Source of the DNA: Dendrobates tinctorius
Taxonomy: Eukaryota
DNA: 64,000 nt
Assembly: GCF_039654945.1 (NCBI RefSeq)
Contig: NW_027361696.1
Location: 21,452,001-21,516,000 of the forward strand
Direction of reading: 5' to 3'
Below are positions 18,463 to 51,798 of this stretch, piece after piece (position 1 is the stretch's first letter; the number at the start of each line of letters is the position of its first letter). The position numbers and the translations under genes were made by a program. The notes under the pieces were generated by a model. The model searched no databases. It was not told the DNA's origin and saw only the letters and a program-made list of their open reading frames with translations.

Positions 18463-21400
18463 TTAGAAGCGGCCATGTCGGTGCCTCGGTGAGCGTGAGC
18501 GGCGGCGGCCACCAGCATCTCTGTTGTTGTGCCGAGGCCTGTCAGGGAAGCGCTTTGGCGAGTGATGTCTGGGCGGAGATCCGGCCCTTGCCCTGTAATG
18601 GAAAACACAGAGACGTGAGGTCACAGAGAAAATTATTATACATTTATATAGATAATTATCACCCAAATCCCACAACCGGGGAGCGATCCTAACCATGGGT
18701 CCATGCACAGAGGTCCAAAAGACATCTGCCACCAATAATCCCCAGAGAACGTGCACACTAAGTCGTTGTGCATAGTTTTCAGAGGAGAAACGCCAAAGTT
18801 TTTGAGCAGGACTTGGAAGAGTTTTTACTGAAAAAAACCCCAAACCTCAGTGTACACGTAGCCTTAATGGGGTTGACCACAACAGCTCACTCACACATTG
18901 ACATTAACCCCTTCCCTATGACATATTACATCCTACATTCAGTCCCCACGGATGGCGCCATGTTATACACCTGACATCTGCATCGGCCAATCATTGCGTA
19001 GTTATCGCAGGCAGGGTCCTGGAGATCAGCAACTGATCACCTAAAAATGTGTTACCCCCAAATTAGTTTTCCAGCCACATTATGCAGTGATTAAAAGGAG
19101 TTCTCCGCTGCCACTCACCGACCTTGGGAGACAACAGGTGCCAGCCATGACGTGTGCACAGACGGAAGGTTTCATTGACCAGAATTGAACATCTGTGCAT
19201 GTCCAGGCAGGCAATTGTCAACGCACCATCATCAGTGACTATCACCTCCCAATGAAGAAGGGTAAGGAACCAGGGACCCCTTTAAGGCCAGGAAGGAAAA
19301 TGGTTGCGTCACATCAGCTCTCAGAAGTGCGACTTCGGGTTTTTCGGACTTTCCCGCTACAATGTGTCCTCTTGGGGGGACCCCTCGCAGTCAGTGACAG
19401 TATAGAGAGGTGCATCTCGAAACATTAGAATATCAAAAAGTTTATTTCAGTTCTTTAATAAAAAAAGTGAAACATTATATAGAGTCATTACAGAGCGATT
19501 TCAAGTGTTTGTTTCTCTTAATGTTGATGATTATGGCTTACAGCCAATGAAAATCCAAAGGTCATTATCTCTGTAAATAATACTTTTATAACACCAGCTT
19601 GAGAAAATTATTTTAAAATCCGAAATGTTGGCCTATTTAAATGTATGTTCTGTAAATGCACTCAATATTTGGTCGGGGCTCCTTTGGCATCAATTACTGC
19701 ATTTAATGCGGTGTGGCATTAAATAGAGTCTCTATGGGGTTAAGGTTAGGTGAGTTTGCTGGCCAATCAAGCACAGTGATACTGTTGTTTGTAAACAAGG
19801 TATTGGTACTTTTTTCAAGCTGGTGTTATAAAGTATTCTAATTTACTGAGATAATGACTTTTGCATTTTCATTGGCTGTAAGCCATAATCATCATTAACA
19901 GAAATAAACAATTGAAACAGATCACTGTTTGTAATGACTGTATAATATATGAGTTTCACTTTTTGTATTGAAGAACTGAAATAAATTAACTTTTTGATGA
20001 TATTCTAATTTTGTGAGATGCACCTGTAGGTGCTCCGCTCCCACCTATCCGCAGACATCCGGCACACAGGATGGAGCCTTGGACAGATGTGATTGGAGCC
20101 TTGTGTTCATCCAAGTACTCACTGTCGGTTACGGGCTCGACCGTACAGCTGCCTCCGGAGCGCGCTGGAGATAGGCTTCAAATGCATAAAGTTGCAAAAT
20201 CCGCCACGGTTACATTCACTGTTGGGGGAGAAGGACAATACGTTAAGTAAGGGTCAGAACGTCGGAGGTGAAGCAGACGACATGAGGAGTTGGCAACACT
20301 CACCCCATCTCATACTGCCGGCAGCAGGACTCCCTGAAGTCTGTGACGGGCGACAGCTCGGCGTGGATTGCCTGCCCGTTGAACCAGCGGTTGTTCAGTT
20401 CCACAAGGGCTCTTTCTGCGTCTTCCTCTCGACGAAACTGTAGGATAAAAGGCTAAAGAGTCAATGAAGGATCGAAGCAAGGAACCCTGGGAAATAGAAG
20501 AGTTGGACAAGCGTCACCTCCCTGCTGGCAGCTTAATATAGCCGTGCCTAATCCGGTTTATGGTAAATAGGATTGGACACCGAGATCTGGGGCAGACAGA
20601 CGAAGGAGACGCTGGACACAAACAGGTAATAAAGCCCCCGAGCACATATCGCTGATATATAGAACATATGATGCTGGTGGTGCGGGGGACACACTGTATA
20701 CGCTGATCGGGCGGGGGGGGCACACTAATTATACACCCTGACCAGGGGAGGCCATAGGCCTTCACCAACACTGACTCTAGCGCCCCGACCAGTCACCGAC
20801 ACTCAGACCCAACAGGGCCCCCAAATATTGCAAGAAGCTGGTTATTTCTGTCTACATGCCACCATACATATACATTTCTCTTATACCCACAGGCTCAATG
20901 ACACGGACAGAATATCAGTGCGGTGTTCACACTCCACCAATGCCCAAATTCGCAACCAGCATCACAATGGCCAGTGCGACCCCGCCAGCAGAGGGCTGCG
21001 ACACAGACAAAGGAGGCAGCCAGGAAGCCAACGGGTTGCGTTGTGGAACGGTGCAGCTCCCAAAGCCCAAGCAAGCGCTGGTTTTCCTTCCCCGACCCGC
21101 CACAGACACCGGTCGGTACCGAAGCATTCCCCAGAAGGTGAGAAGCCTAAAATATCACAAAGCGATCAACCTCAGAAATCCTACAAGATCGTAAATGTTA
21201 ATTGTCTCTTTCCCGCAGCCAGAATGTGTGGTGGCACCAACATGTGCAGCAAAGCCGACAGCACTGCCGGCTCAGGCGCACCCTCCGCTGCCAGTCCCGG
21301 ATATAATGCTGCGCAGCGCATACAAACGTCACATGAGCACCGCCGACGTGGGACATTCCAACCGGGCGCACCCGCAACAAAGCGTCTGCATCTCGGAGGA

Positions 21401-24400
21401 TCTTCTTAAGTTGCGCCGATCGTCCCTGAGAGAAGGTGGAGCAGCCAGCGCTCCCTGGTACTCTCAGCACGCCAGTGTGCCCGATATCACACAAGAACCT
21501 CGATACATTAACATGCCGCCACGATGGTTGTTTTCTGCCCCCCCGATGGGACCCGAGCGACCAGCTAAGCAACGCTGTAAGCTGATGGAAGCAGACCTCC
21601 ACCAAGGCAAGACATCCACCCGGCGGGAGCGACAGAGGTACGTGGCCAAAGACGGCAAGTGCCAGGTCAACTTAGGCCGCATTGAAGAAAAGGCTCGTTT
21701 CTTGTCGGACATTTTCACCACGATCGTGGACCTGAAGTACCGCTGGTTCCTGTTCGTCTTCATGATGTGTTATGTCATCACGTGGCTGCTCTTCGCCACC
21801 CTCTACTACCTGAACGCGCTCTTGCGCCAAGATTTGCTCCACCCGGATGACGAAGACTGGGCTCCTTGCTTCCAGAATGTGGACAGCTTCACAGCAGCGC
21901 TCCTCTTCTCTGTAGAGACCCAGCGCACCATCGGCTACGGCTCCCGCATGGTGACCACAAACTGCCAGGAAGGAGTGTATCTCATAATGGCCCAGTCTAT
22001 CGTGGGCTCCATGATCGACGCCCTCATGGTGGGTTGCATGTTCGTCAAGATCTCGCGACCTAAGAAACGAGCGCAGACGCTGATCTTCAGCCAGAACTGC
22101 GTGGTCTGCCCACGAGATGAAAAGCTTTGCCTCATGTTCCGCATCGGCGACCTCCGGGACAGCCACATGGTGGATGCCAAAATAAGGGCCAAGCTCATCA
22201 AGTCACGGCAGACATACGAAGGGGAATTCCTTCCCCTGGAGCAGTCAGAGATCAACCTCGGCTACGACACCGGAGAAGACCGACTGTTCCTGGTGGAGCC
22301 ACAGGTCATCTGCCACCTAATCGACCACCACAGCCCCTTCTGGGAGATGGGGCCGCAGCAGCTGCTTCAGGAGCAGTTTGAGATCATCGTCATATTGGAG
22401 GGGATCGTGGAAGCCACAGGCAAGTAGACAACTCCCTCTTGTACCCCCCAATACTTCCCTGCCCTCCAGGGTCTATGCATTATTTATAGAGATGCCCCCA
22501 ACAACCAGCTTAGTCTCCATACTGGACAACAACTCAAATTTTAACACTCTCACTAGATCAGAATCATAACCCCCATTCTTTATACTGCAGGCAAGTTTAT
22601 ATTAACAGGTTATTATGGGTGTTATTCATGTGGACATAATCCTAAAAGATACCACCAACTAAGGTTTAAAGGGGTTGTCCAGGGCAACCATATTGAGGAA
22701 ACATCCTCAGGATAAGTCGTCAATATCAGACGGGTGAGGGTCCGATGGTTTGCACACTGTTTTCTCAACTGCCATTGTGGCAATGGGCAATACGCAGAGT
22801 AGTGCGAAATGGTGTTTTTTCAGTATCATGGGACCATAACAGGGGATCGGTGGGAGCGTCTGGTGCCCGATCCCTACTGATCTGATGTGGATGACCCATC
22901 AAAATAACAGAGAGAGAAATAGAATCTGGCACTCAGCTTATATGCAGAAAACTTTTTAATGCAGTCCAGAACAATAAACGTTTCAGTCATCACTTAACCT
23001 TCATCGGTAAACCGACTGCTTCTAAATGAGGTTAGAGTGTTAATGCCTCAACTGTAATGCAGAAGATGAGTCAAGGTCAGGTATGTATTGATATGCAGAC
23101 AATGTTCTGAGAGGCATGAAAAAAATAATCTTGACCTGTGGGGCATGTAAAACTAGACCACTGTATTGTTTGGTTTACGTCCTATTCGGGTTATATGGTA
23201 GTGCGCACAACTAGAAATGGGTGGATGACTAAATGGTCATTGGCTGTGTGCCTGCATCCAACGCGGTGTCCACAGCTCGTCGACAATACAGAACATTGTC
23301 TGCCTATCAATACATACCTGACCTTGACTCATCTTCTGCACTACAGTTGAGGCATTAACACTAACATCATTTAGAAGCAGTCAGTTTACCGATGAAGGTT
23401 AAGTGATGACTGAAACGTTTATTGTTCTGGACTGCATTAAAAAGTTTTCTGCATATAAGTTGAGTGCCAGATTCTATTTCTCTATCATATTGGCTTAGGA
23501 ACCTATCTGTGCACAATTGTAGCTGTGCCACGATATGCTTTCTGCCATCAAAATAACAGGACATCAATATCATCCCTTTTAAGTGATCCCAATGAGATCA
23601 CCATTGAGATCGCTGGGGGTTAGTTCAGGGGTACCAGTATTGTAGTTGTACGTTGTTTGGACCTCACATTTCACACAAATCCCTCTCCCTACCCATCGCA
23701 GGAATGACTTGTCAGGCGAAAAGCTCCTACTTGGAAAATGAGATCATCTGGGGCCATCGCTTCGAGCCCTGCATGACCCTGGAGAAGGGGGCCTTCCGGG
23801 TGGACTACAAGCGCTTCCACAAGACGTTCGAGGTTCAGCTTCCTCGCTGCAGCGCTAAGGAGATGGAGGAGACGAAGGAGTTGGAGGGCTCGGAGTTCAA
23901 CTTCTACTGGGAGAACGGAGACTTCCTAACCGGACGCAGACACATGATGACAGACAGGGGCGACGATGAGGATGAGCGCAGCGGAAGACTCATCGGAAAC
24001 ATCACCGAAGAGCACAGCTCCAAGTTCAACGGCAGCGACTACAACCTGAGAGTCACCCCTCCAGTGATGGATGCTTGGCATCAGTAATTGCATAGGGTGT
24101 AATGAGCGCAGTTCCACTATAGACCAGGCTGCATTATGTAGATTGTGAGCAACAGAGGAGGAAGACACCACCGCGGTCTTGGGATATACATGGACTGATT
24201 AGCATCAAAAGGAAAAAAATAAAGAAAATATTTAATTAACTCTTCATTTCTCGCAGGAGCGCAGTGTAGATCCCGTCATGTCACCTGGTATCCCGACCTC
24301 AACATTTGTGCAGCTGAATCTGACGGCGGTGAATGCCACAGTGCTCCCTAAGTCCATTTCTGATGGGTGTATTAGGGCGGCACCATATGCATGCCTAGTC

Positions 24401-27400
24401 TTCCCAAGCAGCTGCGAGACGTTACCTTGACGTAGACGTTTCCCACTAGGTGATCGCCGAGGTTGTCACAGATATTCATCTCCTCGATCTCTCCGTATTT
24501 CTGCTCCACTTCAGTGAACACTTCCTGAGAGAGTGAAGAAATAATCAGACATGGTCAAGAAGCTGCACCTCCCCCTACTTGTCCTAATGGTCGCTGACCA
24601 GACATGCTGGAAGTAGTAGTGTCACCAGCCTTAGATTACATGCACACACACAAAAAGGCTTTTTCAGGCCGTTCTACTGTGTAACCCGCCTGAAAAAGCG
24701 CATTAAAAAAAAAAAGTGCTAAAAAGAATGGACATGTGCATTGCGACGCAAGAACGACCCGCTGATCATATGTCCAGGCTTCAAATGACTAAGATATCGG
24801 ACTGATGGCCAGGCGGCTTCAGACCTCAATAGTTTATAGATTAAAAAACCCAAAACAATGAAAAGTTGTTGGCGAGTCCACAGGAGACTCTCTCAGGCAT
24901 GCAAAACACAAGCCGCCGAGACACCATCACGTTTCTCAACGCAAGCAATGACTAGCCAGGTCTTTCCCCGGGAAGGAACAACCACGGGAAGGGCAGTCTC
25001 CAATGAAGGAAACCACTTATGCCGAAACATGGTATCCATCCACAGACAGCTGTTTCGGGGTATTGCCCCTCATCAGTGTGGAGTAGGAAACTGGCTAGTA
25101 GGAGCAATGCCTAGTAAAAAACTGAAAAATAAGGATGAATGAACTCATGGAGATCAACATCCAACACTGCGGAGACACCATCAATACCTTTTACTAGGCA
25201 TTGCTCCTACTAGCCAGTTTCCTACTCCACACTGATGAAGGGCAATACCCCGAAACAGCTGTCTGTGGATGGATACCATGTTTTGGCATAGGTGGTTTCC
25301 TTCATTGGAGACTGCCCTTCCTGTGGTTGTTCCTTCCCGGGGAAAGACCTGGCTAGTCATTGCTTGCGTTGAGAAACATGTGATGGTGTCTCCGCGGCTT
25401 GTGTTTTGCATGTTTTTGCATATTTCCCATGAGGGATGGGGGCATTGCTCTAGAATCACTGCGTTGAGAAACATGTGATGGTGTCTACGCAGTGTTGGAT
25501 GTTGATCTCCATGAGTTCATTCATCCTCATTTTTCTCAGGTAAAGTATTAAGAAGGTACCACTCACCTCAAAGAAGTCATCGTAATGTTCCTGCACCTCC
25601 ACATCACTGACGAGCGCTGCGAAAGAAAGAAGAGACGTGAATCATTGCACACCAAAGGAGACACCCAGAGACTACAGAGCTGCGGATGACCATCACTGAG
25701 GATGCCACCACTGATCTATCCACAGGATAATTAATATTGGGAGACCCCTTTAAGTGTCAGGCCTGCAGAATATTAAATATATGACCCTCCGTTAGTGGGG
25801 TACATGCAACATACTATTCTGCTCGCCCCTCATGGTCGTGGCTGAAATTGCCCCTCTACGTCAGCATTATTAGAGCCCACGTGGTAGGTCCCAACCGCAT
25901 GGGTTGCTGAAAGTGGCAATTCTTGTGTCCAGAAGAGGTGGTAAGGCCCCTTTAAGAGCAGGTACATGAGTATTATGTTGGCGCACTTACAGTGGGAGCC
26001 ATTGGCGCTCTGCGCCGTGTTCTGCGGGTTCCGGTAAAGGTTCAAGAGGACGATCGTCTGAAAAAAACCAAAACTAAATCATCAGCTGAGTAGCTACAGT
26101 GTCTAAAATCACATCCTTATGCTGACGAGGGGTCAGAACTCAGAGACCTCATCTGCATGAACTACTTATTAAAGGGGGAAGTCTATACACACTATTGCTG
26201 GGGTCCTAAAATGAAGCAATCACTGCACTGTGTAAGCCGCCTGAGCCCCTCCATCACTGATCAGAGCTGACTGAGTCCTGGGATTGTTCTTCATTCTGAC
26301 TGACTCCATTGTTGGGGGGGGGGGTTGGAGGTTGTGTGTCAGCTCAAATGTAACAGGACGTTACCAAACAAAGACCCCAAAACTACCATGGATGCCATCC
26401 TGCTATATACAATCCTGACTAATACACTGCTATGTATGCATGAAAGTGATTACATGATCTTTTCCGCTACCCAAAAACACACTTCAAGATGCATAGAGCG
26501 ACCGCAGGTCGTTCGACCTGAACATCACAACCTCAAGAGGAGGCCTGGGGCTGATCTGTGCTCGTGTGGATGAGACTGACCTCAGAAAAGCAGAGATTTC
26601 AGAATTTTATTGTTTCTTTTTAAATATACTACAGAGACACCTACAGAAACCCATCACATACACAGCAGGCTGCTAAAATACACCACTCAAATTCAAGGGA
26701 CTGTCCAGGTTTGAGAGCAGGATCTGCAAACGCTGTCACGTGGCGGCACGTCTGCCATCATTACACCGGCAGTCACATGGCGGCACGTCTGCCATCATTA
26801 CACCGGCAGTCACATGGCGGCACGTCTGCCATCATTACACCGGCAGTCACGCGCTGACTGGATGCAATAAGTTTCTTTCCAATCCATTCTAGAGGGTGAA
26901 GCCCGATGAGACCTTCATCCAGTAAAGCATCGGACGCCATGATTATGACCCCATAATAGTCAGTAGGATTGATCAGGTACGTCTGTGATATCTGTTTCGT
27001 AGGAGAGAACAGAAAGCCCAATTCCCTGCCACAGACGTGACAGGAGCCTAAAGCCCTCATACACATTAGACTAACACATCGCAGACATTGGGGCCCAGAC
27101 GACAGTCTGATGTGGGTGAGGGACCACATGACAGTCTGATACGTGTGGGGGCCCACATGGTGATGTCGGGGAGAGAAGGATCAGATATGCCCCATCTCTG
27201 ACTGACGATCCTGTTGATCTCCAGAATACAAGAAATGTCTGTCACTGGCTCTTGATCAGAACACAGGAGCTGAGCGAACGATCGTCTGACTGCCATCTGC
27301 TGTGTATGGGGTCCGCAGGTCACTACCAGAACAAAGTGTGCGGCCCCCAGAGTCCTCACCTGGCTGAAGGTGGGCTTGTTGTGGAGGCGGGAGCAGCGGT

Positions 27401-28334
27401 CTCCATGGCGACAAGCTCCGATTTTGAAGTAAAAGGAACAGTTGACCCTGAAGAACAGACAAAGGGGAGACTGTTATAAAAAGGCCCAAATATCCAACTA
27501 ATCCATCAGTGGCCACAAGAGATACACGCTATATATGCTGAGTCTTCTCCAGGGCCCCGTGCCCTCAGTGGCACCTCTGCAGCCCACTCTCGCCCTTCTC
27601 TGGGGCCAAGAGTCATCAGTGGCCCCCCTATAGCCCATTATCACCCTCCTCCAGGCCCCCCCCCCCCCCCCGTGTCCTCAGTGGCCCCTCTGCAACCCAT
27701 TCTTGCTTCCTCCAGGACCCCGTGTCCCAAGTGTCCCCTCTGCAGCCCATTCTCGCCTTCCACCAGGGCCCCACGTCCTCAATGGCCCCTCTGCAGCCCA
27801 TTCACGCCCTCCGCCAGGGACCCACGTCCTCAATGGCCCCTCTGCAGCCCATTCTTGCCCTCCGCCGGGGCCTCACGTCATCATTGGCCCCTGTGCAGCC
27901 CATTCATGCCCTCCGCCGTGGAGCGTGTCATCAGTAGCCCCTCTGCAGCCTACTCTTGCCCTCCTCCGGGGCCCTGTTTCCTCAGTGGCCCCTGTGCAGC
28001 CCACTCTCACCCTCCTCTGAGGCCCCATCTCTTTAGTGGCCCCTGTATAGCTCAGTCTTGCCCTCCTCTGGGGCGCCGTGCCCTCAATGGCCACTGGGCA
28101 GCCCACACTTGCCCTCCTCTGGGGCCCTGTTTCCTCAGTGGTCCCTGTACAGCCCACTCTCACCCTCCTCTGAGGCCCCGTCTCCTCAGTCGTCCCTGTG
28201 CAGCTCACTCTTGCCCTCCTCTGGGGCCCCGTGCCCTCAATGGCCCCCTGTGCAGCCCACTCTCGCCCTCTTCTGGGGTCCCACGCTTACTTATCCTTCT
28301 CAGTCCCGAAAATCGAGGCTAAGTATTCCGCCAT
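18463..28334 (-). CDS. U2AF1L4: U2 snRNP auxiliary factor small subunit paralog U2AF26 (235 aa)
   Basis: Exons 28291-28334, 27360-27447, 25991-26057, 25567-25616, 24426-24524, 20304-20437, 20123-20218 and 18463-18592 are all GT-AG and phase-compatible (708 nt). [35 protein letters not shown]; [23 protein letters not shown] and terminal HGRF are U2AF26-type. Head-to-head with PSENEN. Confidence 0.93.
19407..20026. mobile_element. Internally deleted Tc1-type element (MITE) in U2AF1L4 intron 7
   Basis: Long inverted arms AGGTGCATCTC...GAGATGCACCTG|TA with only short internal remnants. Confidence 0.75.
20898..24087 (+). CDS. Kir3/GIRK-like inward rectifier potassium channel (~608 aa), nested antisense in U2AF1L4 intron 5
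   Basis: Exons 20898-21137, 21219-22419 and 23702-24087 (1827 nt, open). Motifs [49 protein letters not shown]|MTCQAKSSY, with the phase-1 intron at the Kir3-type position. AATAAA at 24218-24223. The first exon and start codon are less certain than the core. Confidence 0.9.
22913..23483. repeat. ~195-bp inverted repeat with ~180-bp spacer, Penelope-like
   Basis: Arms 22913-23109 and 23289-23483 are near-perfect reverse complements and contain a decayed CCGATGA...GAAAC hammerhead-like core. Confidence 0.75.
25039..25082 (-). ncRNA. Minimal type I hammerhead ribozyme (intact core)
   Basis: UCCACA-CUGAUGA-GGGG-caaua-CCCC-GAAAC-agcu-GUC^UGUGGA: 6-bp helix I, 4-bp helix II, palindromic helix III, GUC cleavage site. 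Confidence 0.8.
25226..25269 (+). ncRNA. Minimal type I hammerhead ribozyme, inverted copy with a helix II mismatch
   Basis: TCCACA-CTGATGA-AGGG-caata-CCCC-GAAAC-agct-GTC-TGTGGA; the first helix II pair is A-C. Confidence 0.6.
26735..26851. repeat. Short tandem repeat, ~37 bp x3
   Basis: GTCACATGGCGGCACGTCTGCCATCATTACACCGGCA repeated. Confidence 0.8.
27545..28282. repeat. ~50-bp C-rich minisatellite in U2AF1L4 intron 1
   Basis: Recurring CCTCAGTGGCCCCTCTGCAGCCCACTCTTGCCCTCCTC units. Confidence 0.85.

Positions 28335-38921: not shown

Positions 38922-51798
<12,877 letters not shown>

Follow-up and report, generated by a model that had tools for sequence, protein, structure and literature searches.

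The inward rectifier (Kir) gene in the analysed window, a stretch of 64,000 nucleotides of Dendrobates tinctorius DNA, is best read as an intact subunit of a third Kir3 lineage that keeps ancestral "Kir2-type" residues. An arginine directly before its selectivity filter would be neutralised by an aspartate in TM2, and the channel would be a conducting, K+-selective inward rectifier less sensitive to Ba2+ than GIRK2/4. Taken as a whole, we consider this reading reasonably likely.

Gene structure and locus

The gene was modelled from splice sites and orthologs as three coding exons encoding 608 aa (Table 1). The second exon matches the Pfam families IRK (PF01007, 1.4e-55) and IRK_C (PF17655, 5.2e-46). 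Its best match among solved chains is GIRK2 (Kir3.2, PDB 3SYA; 1.3e-109), and Kir2.1 is matched at 3.9e-88. A 13-residue stretch around the filter contains T-I-G-Y-G and the Glu/Arg pair, and aligns without gaps to GIRK2 and Kir2.2. Exon 2 ends with ACA G and exon 3 opens with GA ATG, so that the junction is at phase 1 in a Gly codon. The GC donor of this intron is common to Xenopus laevis, Ranitomeya and the bird paralog. Four sequencing runs guessed to be RNA covered the introns and contained no exon-exon joint, which identifies them as genomic DNA.

Comparison with Ranitomeya over 257 codons gave a dN/dS of 0.074. A pseudogene was rejected on this low ratio (0.07), the intact frame and the in-frame indels of the tail. 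As judged from its sequence, the gene is an intact Kir channel gene under purifying selection.

Exons of U2AF1L4 are found on both sides of the channel gene on the opposite strand, so the channel gene is nested antisense between the exons of its host. The Ranitomeya ortholog also sits inside a minus-strand zf-CCCH/RRM gene, with KMT2B at the same locus, and the order in X. laevis is KMT2B, channel gene, PSENEN (PEN-2). A bird paralog is located between USP28 and UBE4A. The window gene is the paralog of the KMT2B-PSENEN locus, and its sister paralog is at USP28-UBE4A.

Table 1. Features of the channel gene and its host gene in the window (a slash in a sequence marks a splice junction)
Feature	Position	Strand	Observation
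U2AF1L4 exons, end of RRM and zinc finger 2	20182..20470	-	left of channel gene; a 17-residue stretch and ...GGFCNFMH
Coding exon 1	20898..21137	+	starts at ATG of MTRTEY, where ortholog tblastn matches begin; spliced translation; first 80 aa of the ~217-aa N-terminal extension; donor AAG/GTGAGA
Motif LPRP.TDT.RY..PQK	21075-21137	+	end of exon 1; kept in both paralogs and sturgeon
Intron 1	21138..21218	+	81 nt, GT-AG; ortholog proteins run ...PQK/PECVV across it
TAA within intron 1	21192-21194	+	in frame
Coding exon 2	21219..22419	+	Pfam IRK and IRK_C, GIRK2 and Kir2.1 chain matches; spliced translation; remaining N-terminus, slide helix, TM1, pore helix and filter, TM2, tether, most of cytoplasmic domain; ends with first base of the Gly codon in EATG
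LKYR	21732..21743	+	Tyr for Trp of the LKWR lipid-interface motif
Arg (CGC) directly before TIGYG	21924..21926	+	in ETQRTIGYG, 12-residue stretch of pore helix and filter
TIGYG selectivity filter	21927..21941	+	canonical, then Ser-Arg; Glu-Arg pair behind filter kept
Asp (GAC) in TM2, GSMIDA	22017..22019	+	gap-free alignment to Kir2.2 and GIRK2
Tether	22047..22079	+	11 residues; RPKKRAQT part identical to Kir2.2
CD loop RIGDLRDSH	22140..22166	+	Na+-site Asp at 22149-22151
Intron 2	22420..23701	+	phase 1, inside Gly codon of EATG/M; GC donor ACAG/GCAAGT, AG acceptor
Last coding exon	23702..24087	+	end of cytoplasmic domain; Pfam IRK_C 1.4e-20; aligned to Kir2.1 and GIRK1
G-beta-gamma Leu in CMTLEKG	23779-23781	+	
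FYWEN motif	23902-23916	+	Kir2.1-like
End of last exon	24049-24087	+	acidic tail, SDYNL, then AGA at 24049-24051 (TGA stop in relatives); TAA stop at 24085-24087
U2AF1L4 5' exons	27381..28334	-	a 15-residue stretch at 28293-28334; zinc finger 1 at 27381-27440

A third Kir3 lineage

The trees placed the window gene in a third Kir3 clade (support 100/100), within a subclade A that is also supported at 100/100. Kir3-like sequences were separated from Kir2, Kir6 and invertebrate sequences by a split of 100/99, and quick trees gave SH-aLRT values of 99-100. The branching order of the three Kir3 lineages had bootstraps of 31-42, and fish and lungfish sequences fall weakly with subclade A. The third lineage ranges from ray-finned fishes to birds.

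GIRK genes have been reported to share a phase-1 intron in the Gly codon of (M/I)VEATG/M, exclusive to those of vertebrates and tunicates, a KSRQ block, and a leucine (L339 in GIRK4, L333 in GIRK1) that is key to activation by G-beta-gamma (PMC1999503). All of them were found in the window gene. The block reads LIKSRQT in exon 2, and CMTLEKG aligns with VISLEEG of GIRK1, where Kir2.1 has VLFEEK. Exon 2 as queried is 56-63% identical to representatives with a GIRK2/3/4-type filter. The window protein further shares the Na+-site Asp with GIRK2/4 and the TM2 Asp with GIRK1.

In contrast to this shared framework, the canonical Kir3.1-3.4 signature of ETE(T/A)TIGYG with LKWR is absent: the window protein has ETQR and LKYR, and its tether is not SQPKKRAET. 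It also differs from canonical Kir3 in its long N-terminus, its total length of about 600 aa and its reported absence from humans. From Kir2 it is separated by the tree position, by GDLR instead of the Asn-bearing CD loop, and by Leu instead of Glu at the G-beta-gamma site. By sequence, the window gene is a member of a third Kir3 (GIRK-type) lineage beside GIRK1 and GIRK2/3/4.

The lineage was previously recorded as missing from humans (PMC8016131, 2021), and the "KCNJ5/9L" of Lovell et al. (PMC3711925) shows that such a gene was known and absent from mammals. The bird USP28-UBE4A gene fits KCNJ5/9L, and the roughly 600-aa genes on Xenopus chromosome 7 (PMC8016131) fit the ortholog P0021 and its paralog. 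The passages of both papers on these genes say only that they exist and are lacking in mammals or humans, and KCNJ5/9L is the sister paralog of the window gene at KMT2B-PSENEN. Xenopus GIRK5 was considered as the window gene and rejected, since the literature treats GIRK5 as the KCNJ5 ortholog. Our literature search found no functional study of any third-lineage member, and its text search returned no match for QRTIGYG or TQHTIGYG.

Origin of the Kir2-type residues

A previous sequence-only reading described the protein as a mosaic of Kir2 residues on a Kir3 scaffold. The residues that it listed are all in frame, at or next to the positions assigned to them, and its comparison states agree with the solved chains: ETETTIGYG, SIVNA, SQPKKRAET and LKWR in GIRK2, and ETQTTIGYG, CIIDS and ARPKKRAQT in Kir2.2. 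The residues stand, but the mosaic framing is the less apt one. ETQ, the TM2 Asp, RPKKRAQT and GD(L/M)R occur in Kir2, GIRK1 or invertebrate Kirs, so the simpler view of most Kir2-type residues is that they are ancestral, kept in this lineage and later changed in GIRK2/3/4. The TM2 Asp, being present in GIRK1, is no stranger to Kir3. Gene conversion or recombination with a Kir2 gene was rejected as their source, because the Kir2-like states occur as isolated residues at scattered sites; it is also disfavoured because these states are common to invertebrates or GIRK1, and because the protein is Kir3-like over its whole length.

In this lineage itself, two changes appear to be derived: Arg at the site preceding TIGYG, and Tyr in place of Trp in LKWR. 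Representatives of the GIRK1 and GIRK2/3/4 types all have ETEA or ETET, and (K/Q)WR in most cases. More widely, the lipid-interface motif is (K/R/Q)WR in most representatives where it was found, and the window clade has Y, C or I in place of the Trp. The CD loop contains Asp in GIRK2/3/4-type and arthropod representatives, and Asn in GIRK1 and Kir2.

Conservation of the arginine and the aspartate

Without exception, the 120 best homologs contain E[TS]QRTIGYG, the TM2 Asp, LKYR, SRPKKRA[QE]T and GDLR.SH. They span frogs, salamanders, coelacanth, lungfish, birds, turtles, an alligator, a lizard and a sturgeon. About 105 teleost homologs also have QRTIGYG and the TM2 Asp, which brings the pair to about 225 homologs from teleosts to birds. 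The sequence-only reading had proposed that Thr or Ala in orthologs would point to a private mutation or an error, and the alignment gave the opposite outcome. A polymorphism, private mutation or base-call error in one genome, which has nothing in its favour beyond the rarity of Arg here in mammalian Kirs, can be dismissed, because about 225 homologs share the Arg, Xenopus encodes it by CGT, synonymous with the CGC of Ranitomeya and the window, and a same-species genomic contig (run X15, possibly the source of the assembly) spans 21609-21940 with 0 differing letters.

In a few teleost members Met replaces Arg and the Asp is kept, so the Asp can be present without dependence on the Arg. The Arg/Asp pair has a single origin, and its constant co-occurrence is therefore no statistical evidence for coupling.

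Among 139 Kir cluster representatives, Arg was confined to the clade of the window gene. The commonest residue at its position is His (58/139), mostly together with a TM2 Gln. The sequence-only reading had called a basic residue before TIGYG unusual, which is right for Arg but too broad for a potentially basic residue. The His belongs to ETQHTIGYG Kirs of invertebrates; the one looked up is a shrimp protein (Penaeus P0153). CAC and CGC differ by one base change, but the invertebrate proteins are outside the Kir3 group and nearly all of them pair the residue with Gln, not Asp. His in that setting is titratable and probably neutral.

Proposed Arg/Asp pairing and the predicted channel

The window Arg aligns with Kir2.1 T141, GIRK4 T148 and KcsA T74, and the TM2 Asp with Kir2.1 D172, GIRK1 D173 and GIRK2 N184. 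The two residues had been treated separately in the sequence-only reading; the link between them is added here from Kir2.1 mutagenesis. In the accounts that PMC2712977 and PMC3753602 give of Chatelain et al. (2005, Neuron 47:833), Kir2.1 T141K/R conducts only with D172; conduction is lost with D172N and restored by Asp at 169 or 176. The mutants showed reduced Ba2+ block, and monovalent selectivity and polyamine rectification were kept (PMC2712977, PMC3753602). Since the gap-free alignment places the window pair at T141 and D172, the behaviour of these mutants was taken as the prediction for the window channel. Kir2.1 is a different protein background from the window channel. The engineered channels are laboratory mutants of Kir2, whereas the window pair is natural and fixed in nearly all members seen of a vertebrate Kir3 lineage.

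In the predicted channel, the Arg would lie at the pore-helix end that faces the cavity. Its charge would be balanced by the TM2 Asp, either within one subunit or between neighbours, leaving the cavity close to neutral and permeable to K+. The channel would conduct and be K+-selective, with inward rectification through polyamines and retained cytoplasmic acidic residues, and its Ba2+ sensitivity is expected to be below that of GIRK2/4. The TM2 Asp had suggested strong rectification to the sequence-only reading. The Asp is present, but that guess is weakened, because by analogy with Kir2.1 the Asp is probably a counter-charge to the Arg and need not be a free rectification controller.

Gating by G-beta-gamma and Na+ sensitivity are likely but weaker predictions. 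The sequence proxies are the G-beta-gamma Leu, the GDLR Asp and the basic tether, together with a Tyr for the Trp of LKWR. The sequence-only reading had also suggested a possibly more PIP2-avid or less G-beta-gamma-dependent channel; the retained GIRK leucine and GIRK intron argue for G-beta-gamma gating. Gating may also be altered, in ways that are hard to predict, by the Tyr at the lipid interface and by the 217-aa N-terminus.

Alternative readings

Some Kir3 subunits, GIRK1 and GIRK3 among them, act chiefly as parts of heteromers, and the window protein might likewise be a silent or modulatory subunit. Its homotetramers, with four Arg under the filter, would then be nonconducting, and it would act through co-assembly with canonical GIRKs by altering their conductance, trafficking or gating. 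The positive charge at the cavity apex, the changed lipid-interface Trp and the long, conserved N-terminal extension with its motifs are consistent with such a role. However, Kir2.1 T141K/R with D172 conducts as a homomer, the pore helix has LFS as in GIRK2/4 and not the LFF of GIRK1-type representatives, and neither the filter nor the Glu-Arg pair that supports it is disrupted. We regard a purely modulatory role as unlikely.

Little credence is likewise given to a view close to the first guess of the sequence-only reading, in which the channel resembles Kir2: a strong rectifier, constitutively active and with little need of G-beta-gamma. Such a channel would agree with the TM2 Asp, the ETQ and the Kir2.2-identical RPKKRAQT tether. 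The C-terminal FYWEN/FCYENE stretch is also Kir2.1-like, and the last exon scores slightly higher against Kir2.1 than against GIRK1/2. These likenesses are outweighed by the tree, which puts the clade with Kir3 (100/99), and by the GIRK-specific intron and the G-beta-gamma Leu, where Kir2.1 has Glu. The Asp, moreover, is probably engaged by the Arg and unavailable to polyamines, although Kir2.1 T141K/R still rectified.

It is quite improbable that the Arg makes the channel Na+-leaky or very low in conductance. The site can be sensitive, since T148I and T149insR of KCNJ5 (GIRK4), at or next to it, are listed among the mutations of aldosterone-producing adenomas (PMC7999899). It also adjoins the position homologous to the Q/R site of glutamate receptors, at which an Arg affects ion selectivity and polyamine block as well as conductance (PMC3753602). 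In contrast, Kir2.1 T141K/R showed no change in relative monovalent permeability, TIGYG and its supporting residues are canonical, and it is less simple, though possible, for purifying selection to have preserved a leaky channel through several hundred million years. The conducting, charge-compensated Kir3 channel is the reading that we retain.

Implications

What is known of GIRK physiology and pharmacology comes almost entirely from the four mammalian subunits, but the standard models zebrafish, Xenopus and chicken each have one or two further GIRK-type genes, for which no channel recordings are known. A lineage lost in mammals may have evolved both a permanently charged Arg/Asp pair in the central cavity beneath the filter and its own N-terminal regulatory domain of about 220 aa; this wider proposal is tentative and somewhat doubtful.

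As far as found, the Arg/Asp pair is otherwise known from mutagenesis alone. Its natural occurrence makes possible a native test of the amount of charge that a K+ channel cavity can bear, and of how the end of the pore helix communicates with the inner helix. If the wider proposal is true, permeation and pharmacology would set the Arg/Asp channels apart from every Kir characterised so far, through Ba2+ resistance and a changed conductance or polyamine block, and the salt bridge would perhaps couple the filter to the inner-helix gate. This bears on the dissection of K+ currents with Ba2+ or tertiapin in non-mammalian preparations. Fish, amphibian, reptile and bird tissues would then contain an unrecognised G-protein-gated K+ conductance.

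Membership of the window gene in the Kir3 group

All of the motifs listed in the sequence-only reading are present and in frame within one plus-strand ORF. This ORF matches the Pfam families IRK (1.4e-55) and IRK_C (5.2e-46), and among solved chains GIRK2 (1.3e-109) ranks above Kir2.1 (3.9e-88) and Kir2.2, followed by Kir6.2. The states quoted there for comparison were borne out by gap-free alignments with the window protein, in which GIRK2 reads ETETTIGYG, SIVNA, SQPKKRAET and LKWR, and Kir2.2 reads ETQTTIGYG, CIIDS and ARPKKRAQT.

Three features are reported as exclusive to GIRK genes (Tanaka-Kunishima et al., PMC1999503), and the window gene has all of them: the phase-1 intron in the Gly codon of ...VEATG|M, the KSRQ block, and the Leu equivalent to GIRK4 L339 (CMTLEKG in the window, VISLEEG in GIRK1, VLFEEK in Kir2.1). 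The gene lacks the canonical ETE(T/A) and LKWR signatures. Taken together, these observations place the gene, on sequence grounds, in the Kir3 group outside Kir3.1-3.4.

Mapping of ortholog proteins onto the window gave three coding exons and a predicted product of 608 aa, versus 606-615 aa in full-length frog orthologs; one Phyllobates model has an extra 5' exon near 20487-20630. The GC donor of the large intron (22420-22425) is also found in X. laevis, Ranitomeya and the bird paralog (loci L002:11997, L004:11108 and L001:11458), so this is an old GC-AG intron. Within it, 134 nt (22451-22586) are missing from the contig of one related species (run X3), a between-species indel. Four runs aligned to the locus had been guessed to be RNA; they cover the introns and contain zero exon joints, and are therefore DNA.

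Features of the channel gene and its surroundings in the window
Feature	Position	Strand	Basis
U2AF1L4 (U2AF1-type) exons flanking the channel gene: zinc finger 1, end of RRM, zinc finger 2	20182-20470, 27381-28334	-	nesting as annotated in Ranitomeya (L004)
Exon 1, MTRTEY...PQK	20898-21137	+	ortholog mapping
N-terminal extension	20898-21137 plus 21219-21629	+	comparison of 15 members
Conserved block LAYLPRPPTDT.RY..FPQKPE	21075-21137 (motif)	+	strong conservation in both paralogs and sturgeon
81-nt GT-AG intron, in-frame stop inside	between exons 1 and 2	+	ortholog mapping
ORF with all motifs in frame	21195-22427	+	translation
Exon 2	21219-22419	+	ortholog mapping
LKYR	21732-21743	+	translation
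Pore helix-filter [12 protein letters not shown], Arg codon CGC	21924-21926	+	translation
TM2 GSMIDA, Asp codon GAC	22017-22019	+	translation
Tether [11 protein letters not shown]	22047-22079	+	translation
RIGDLRDSH	22140-22166	+	translation
1282-nt phase-1 intron splitting Gly codon of EATG|M, GC donor ACAG|GCAAGT	between exons 2 and 3	+	ortholog mapping
Exon 3	23702-24087	+	ortholog mapping
N runs (assembly gaps or masked stretches)	44230-44371, 45968-46140, 47067-47281, 48865-49008

Conservation of the pore arginine

Nearest in sequence, with 95-96% identity, are 'GIRK3-like' predictions from dendrobatid frogs. The best 120 matches span frogs, salamanders, coelacanth, lungfish, birds, turtles, an alligator, a lizard and a sturgeon, and every one of them carries E[TS]QRTIGYG, the TM2 Asp, LKYR, SRPKKRA[QE]T and GDLR.SH. 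A further search, started from a cichlid member, listed about 105 teleost proteins, and QRTIGYG and the Asp were present in all of them. Thr or Ala in orthologs, which the sequence-only reading had set against its own interpretation, was thus not what these proteins carry. The window and Ranitomeya encode the Arg as CGC, Xenopus as CGT. Between the window and Ranitomeya, 257 codons give a dN/dS of 0.074; in the comparison with Xenopus, synonymous sites have reached saturation and pN is 0.06. A same-species contig spanning 21609-21940, including the Arg codon, has zero differing letters. The Arg is a fixed character of the lineage and is not private to one genome.

To place this residue in the wider family, an exhaustive search was reduced to one representative per 50%-identity cluster, and the position before TIGYG was readable in 139 of the best 150 representatives. 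His was the most frequent (58 of 139), mostly as ETQHTIGYG and with TM2 Gln in nearly all; the one His representative looked up is from a shrimp. Thr followed with 43, then Ala with 17 (the GIRK1 type, with TM2 Asp), Gln with 7, Val with 6, Met with 3, Ser with 2 and Pro with 1. Arg was found in two, both members of the Arg clade. Judged by these representatives, a titratable basic residue is common before TIGYG outside vertebrates, and a permanently charged one is limited to the Arg clade among the 139. The earlier view that a basic residue here is unusual thus holds for Arg and fails for His. A single transition (CAC to CGC) converts His to Arg. A minority of teleost-type clade members (P0122, P0125 and P0270, from teleost and unnamed contigs) have Met before TIGYG and keep the TM2 Asp; they may represent a second fish paralog.

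A third Kir3 lineage with two paralogs

In a careful maximum-likelihood analysis of 81 rows (ultrafast bootstrap/SH-aLRT), the Arg clade was supported at 100/100, GIRK1 at 100/100 and GIRK2/3/4 at 99/97. These three and a small ETQV group were separated from Kir2, Kir6, amphioxus and invertebrate rows at 100/99, and the branching order among the three Kir3 lineages received bootstraps of 31-42, with no order resolved. The ETQV group (P0148, P0157 and P0176, the first from JGI/IMG) lies among the Kir3-like rows and has ETQVT(I/V)GYG with TM2 Asp.

Within the Arg clade, the window gene belongs to a group, supported at 100/100, that unites coelacanth, salamander and frog 'A' sequences. A second frog copy, 'B', is about 78% identical and lies on the same chromosome, and the two are told apart by their neighbour genes. 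In X. laevis, A is flanked by a KMT2B-like gene and PEN-2/PSENEN, and the Ranitomeya A gene adjoins KMT2B, nested in a minus-strand zf-CCCH/RRM gene. USP28 and UBE4A flank the bird gene. On the human map these neighbours are at 19q13.12 (KMT2B) and 11q23 (KMT2A region), positions which suggest that the A and B copies arose in the vertebrate genome duplications.

No mammalian member was among the about 225 matches listed, and absence from mammals rests on two papers. The locus between USP28 and UBE4A in bird, lizard and frog was named 'KCNJ5/9L' and called lost in mammals (Lovell et al. 2013, PMC3711925), and two additional putative GIRK channels, absent from humans, were placed on Xenopus chromosome 7 (Rangel-Garcia et al. 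2021, PMC8016131). In the passages on these genes no discussion of pore residues or function of the lineage was found, nor was the arginine pore motif found in the searchable literature. The window gene is an ordinary ortholog within a GIRK lineage of non-mammals that is annotated but uncharacterised.

Probable ancestral states and lineage novelties

The Kir2-like residues that had been described as a mosaic pore are present, but each occurs elsewhere: ETQ in Kir2 and most invertebrate representatives, the TM2 Asp in Kir2, GIRK1, the ETQV group and echinoderm-type representatives, RPKKRAQT in Kir2.2, and the Asp of GD(L/M)R in GIRK2/3/4 and arthropod representatives. The simplest reading of these sequences is that the Kir2-like states are ancestral and were later changed to E, N and Q in GIRK2/3/4.

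Four characters are the clade's own. Besides the Arg, Tyr, Cys or Ile replaces the LKWR Trp, which other Kirs keep almost without exception. The third is an N-terminal extension with further conserved patches RPSV.I..DLP.YRR.S and SVP[DN]I; it spans about 217 aa in the window protein and 190-247 aa across 15 compared members, which represent both paralogs and range from sturgeon to birds. The fourth is the distinct C-terminal end, SDYNL in A and NDLDV in B.

In the distal C-terminus, FYWEN (23902-23916) aligns with FCYENE, the ER-export signal of Kir2.1, and for the last exon the Kir2.1 score is slightly above those of GIRK1/2. Near 23960-23973 the length of the acidic tail differs between sequences by multiples of three, with 6-nt insertions in same-species runs and 18-nt in related species. 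At 24049-24051 the window has AGA where two related species carry a TGA stop (A>T; runs X2 and X3), and same-species runs X1 and X15 match the window. Compared with those two species, this species alone thus has 12 extra residues after SDYNL, and these may hide a binding motif at the terminus.

A proposed Arg/Asp pair in the cavity

In the alignment, the Arg falls on Kir2.1 T141 and the Asp on D172. According to two accounts of Chatelain et al. 2005 (in PMC2712977 and PMC3753602), Kir2.1 T141K and T141R conduct only when D172 is present; current is lost with D172N and returns when an Asp or Glu is placed at 169 or 176. The basic residue lowers Ba2+ block, leaves relative monovalent permeability unchanged and still allows polyamine rectification. 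For K2P channels these accounts describe the same compensation within a subunit or between neighbours, not diagonally. As a caution, the adenoma mutations listed for GIRK4 include T148I and T149insR (PMC7999899).

The natural pair of the window gene is the same combination as engineered T141K/R with D172, and the TM2 Asp is therefore proposed to act mainly as a counter-charge to the Arg. By this analogy, from which we infer all functional statements on the channel, the cavity would be roughly neutral and the protein would work as an inward rectifier that is selective for K+ and weakly blocked by Ba2+. Read from the sequence, the acidic residues of the cytoplasmic region are kept, with Asp at the position of Kir2.1 E224 and Glu at that of E299 by our numbering of Kir2.1. 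The natural Arg/Asp cavity pair is the point of interest in this lineage, and it is directly testable.
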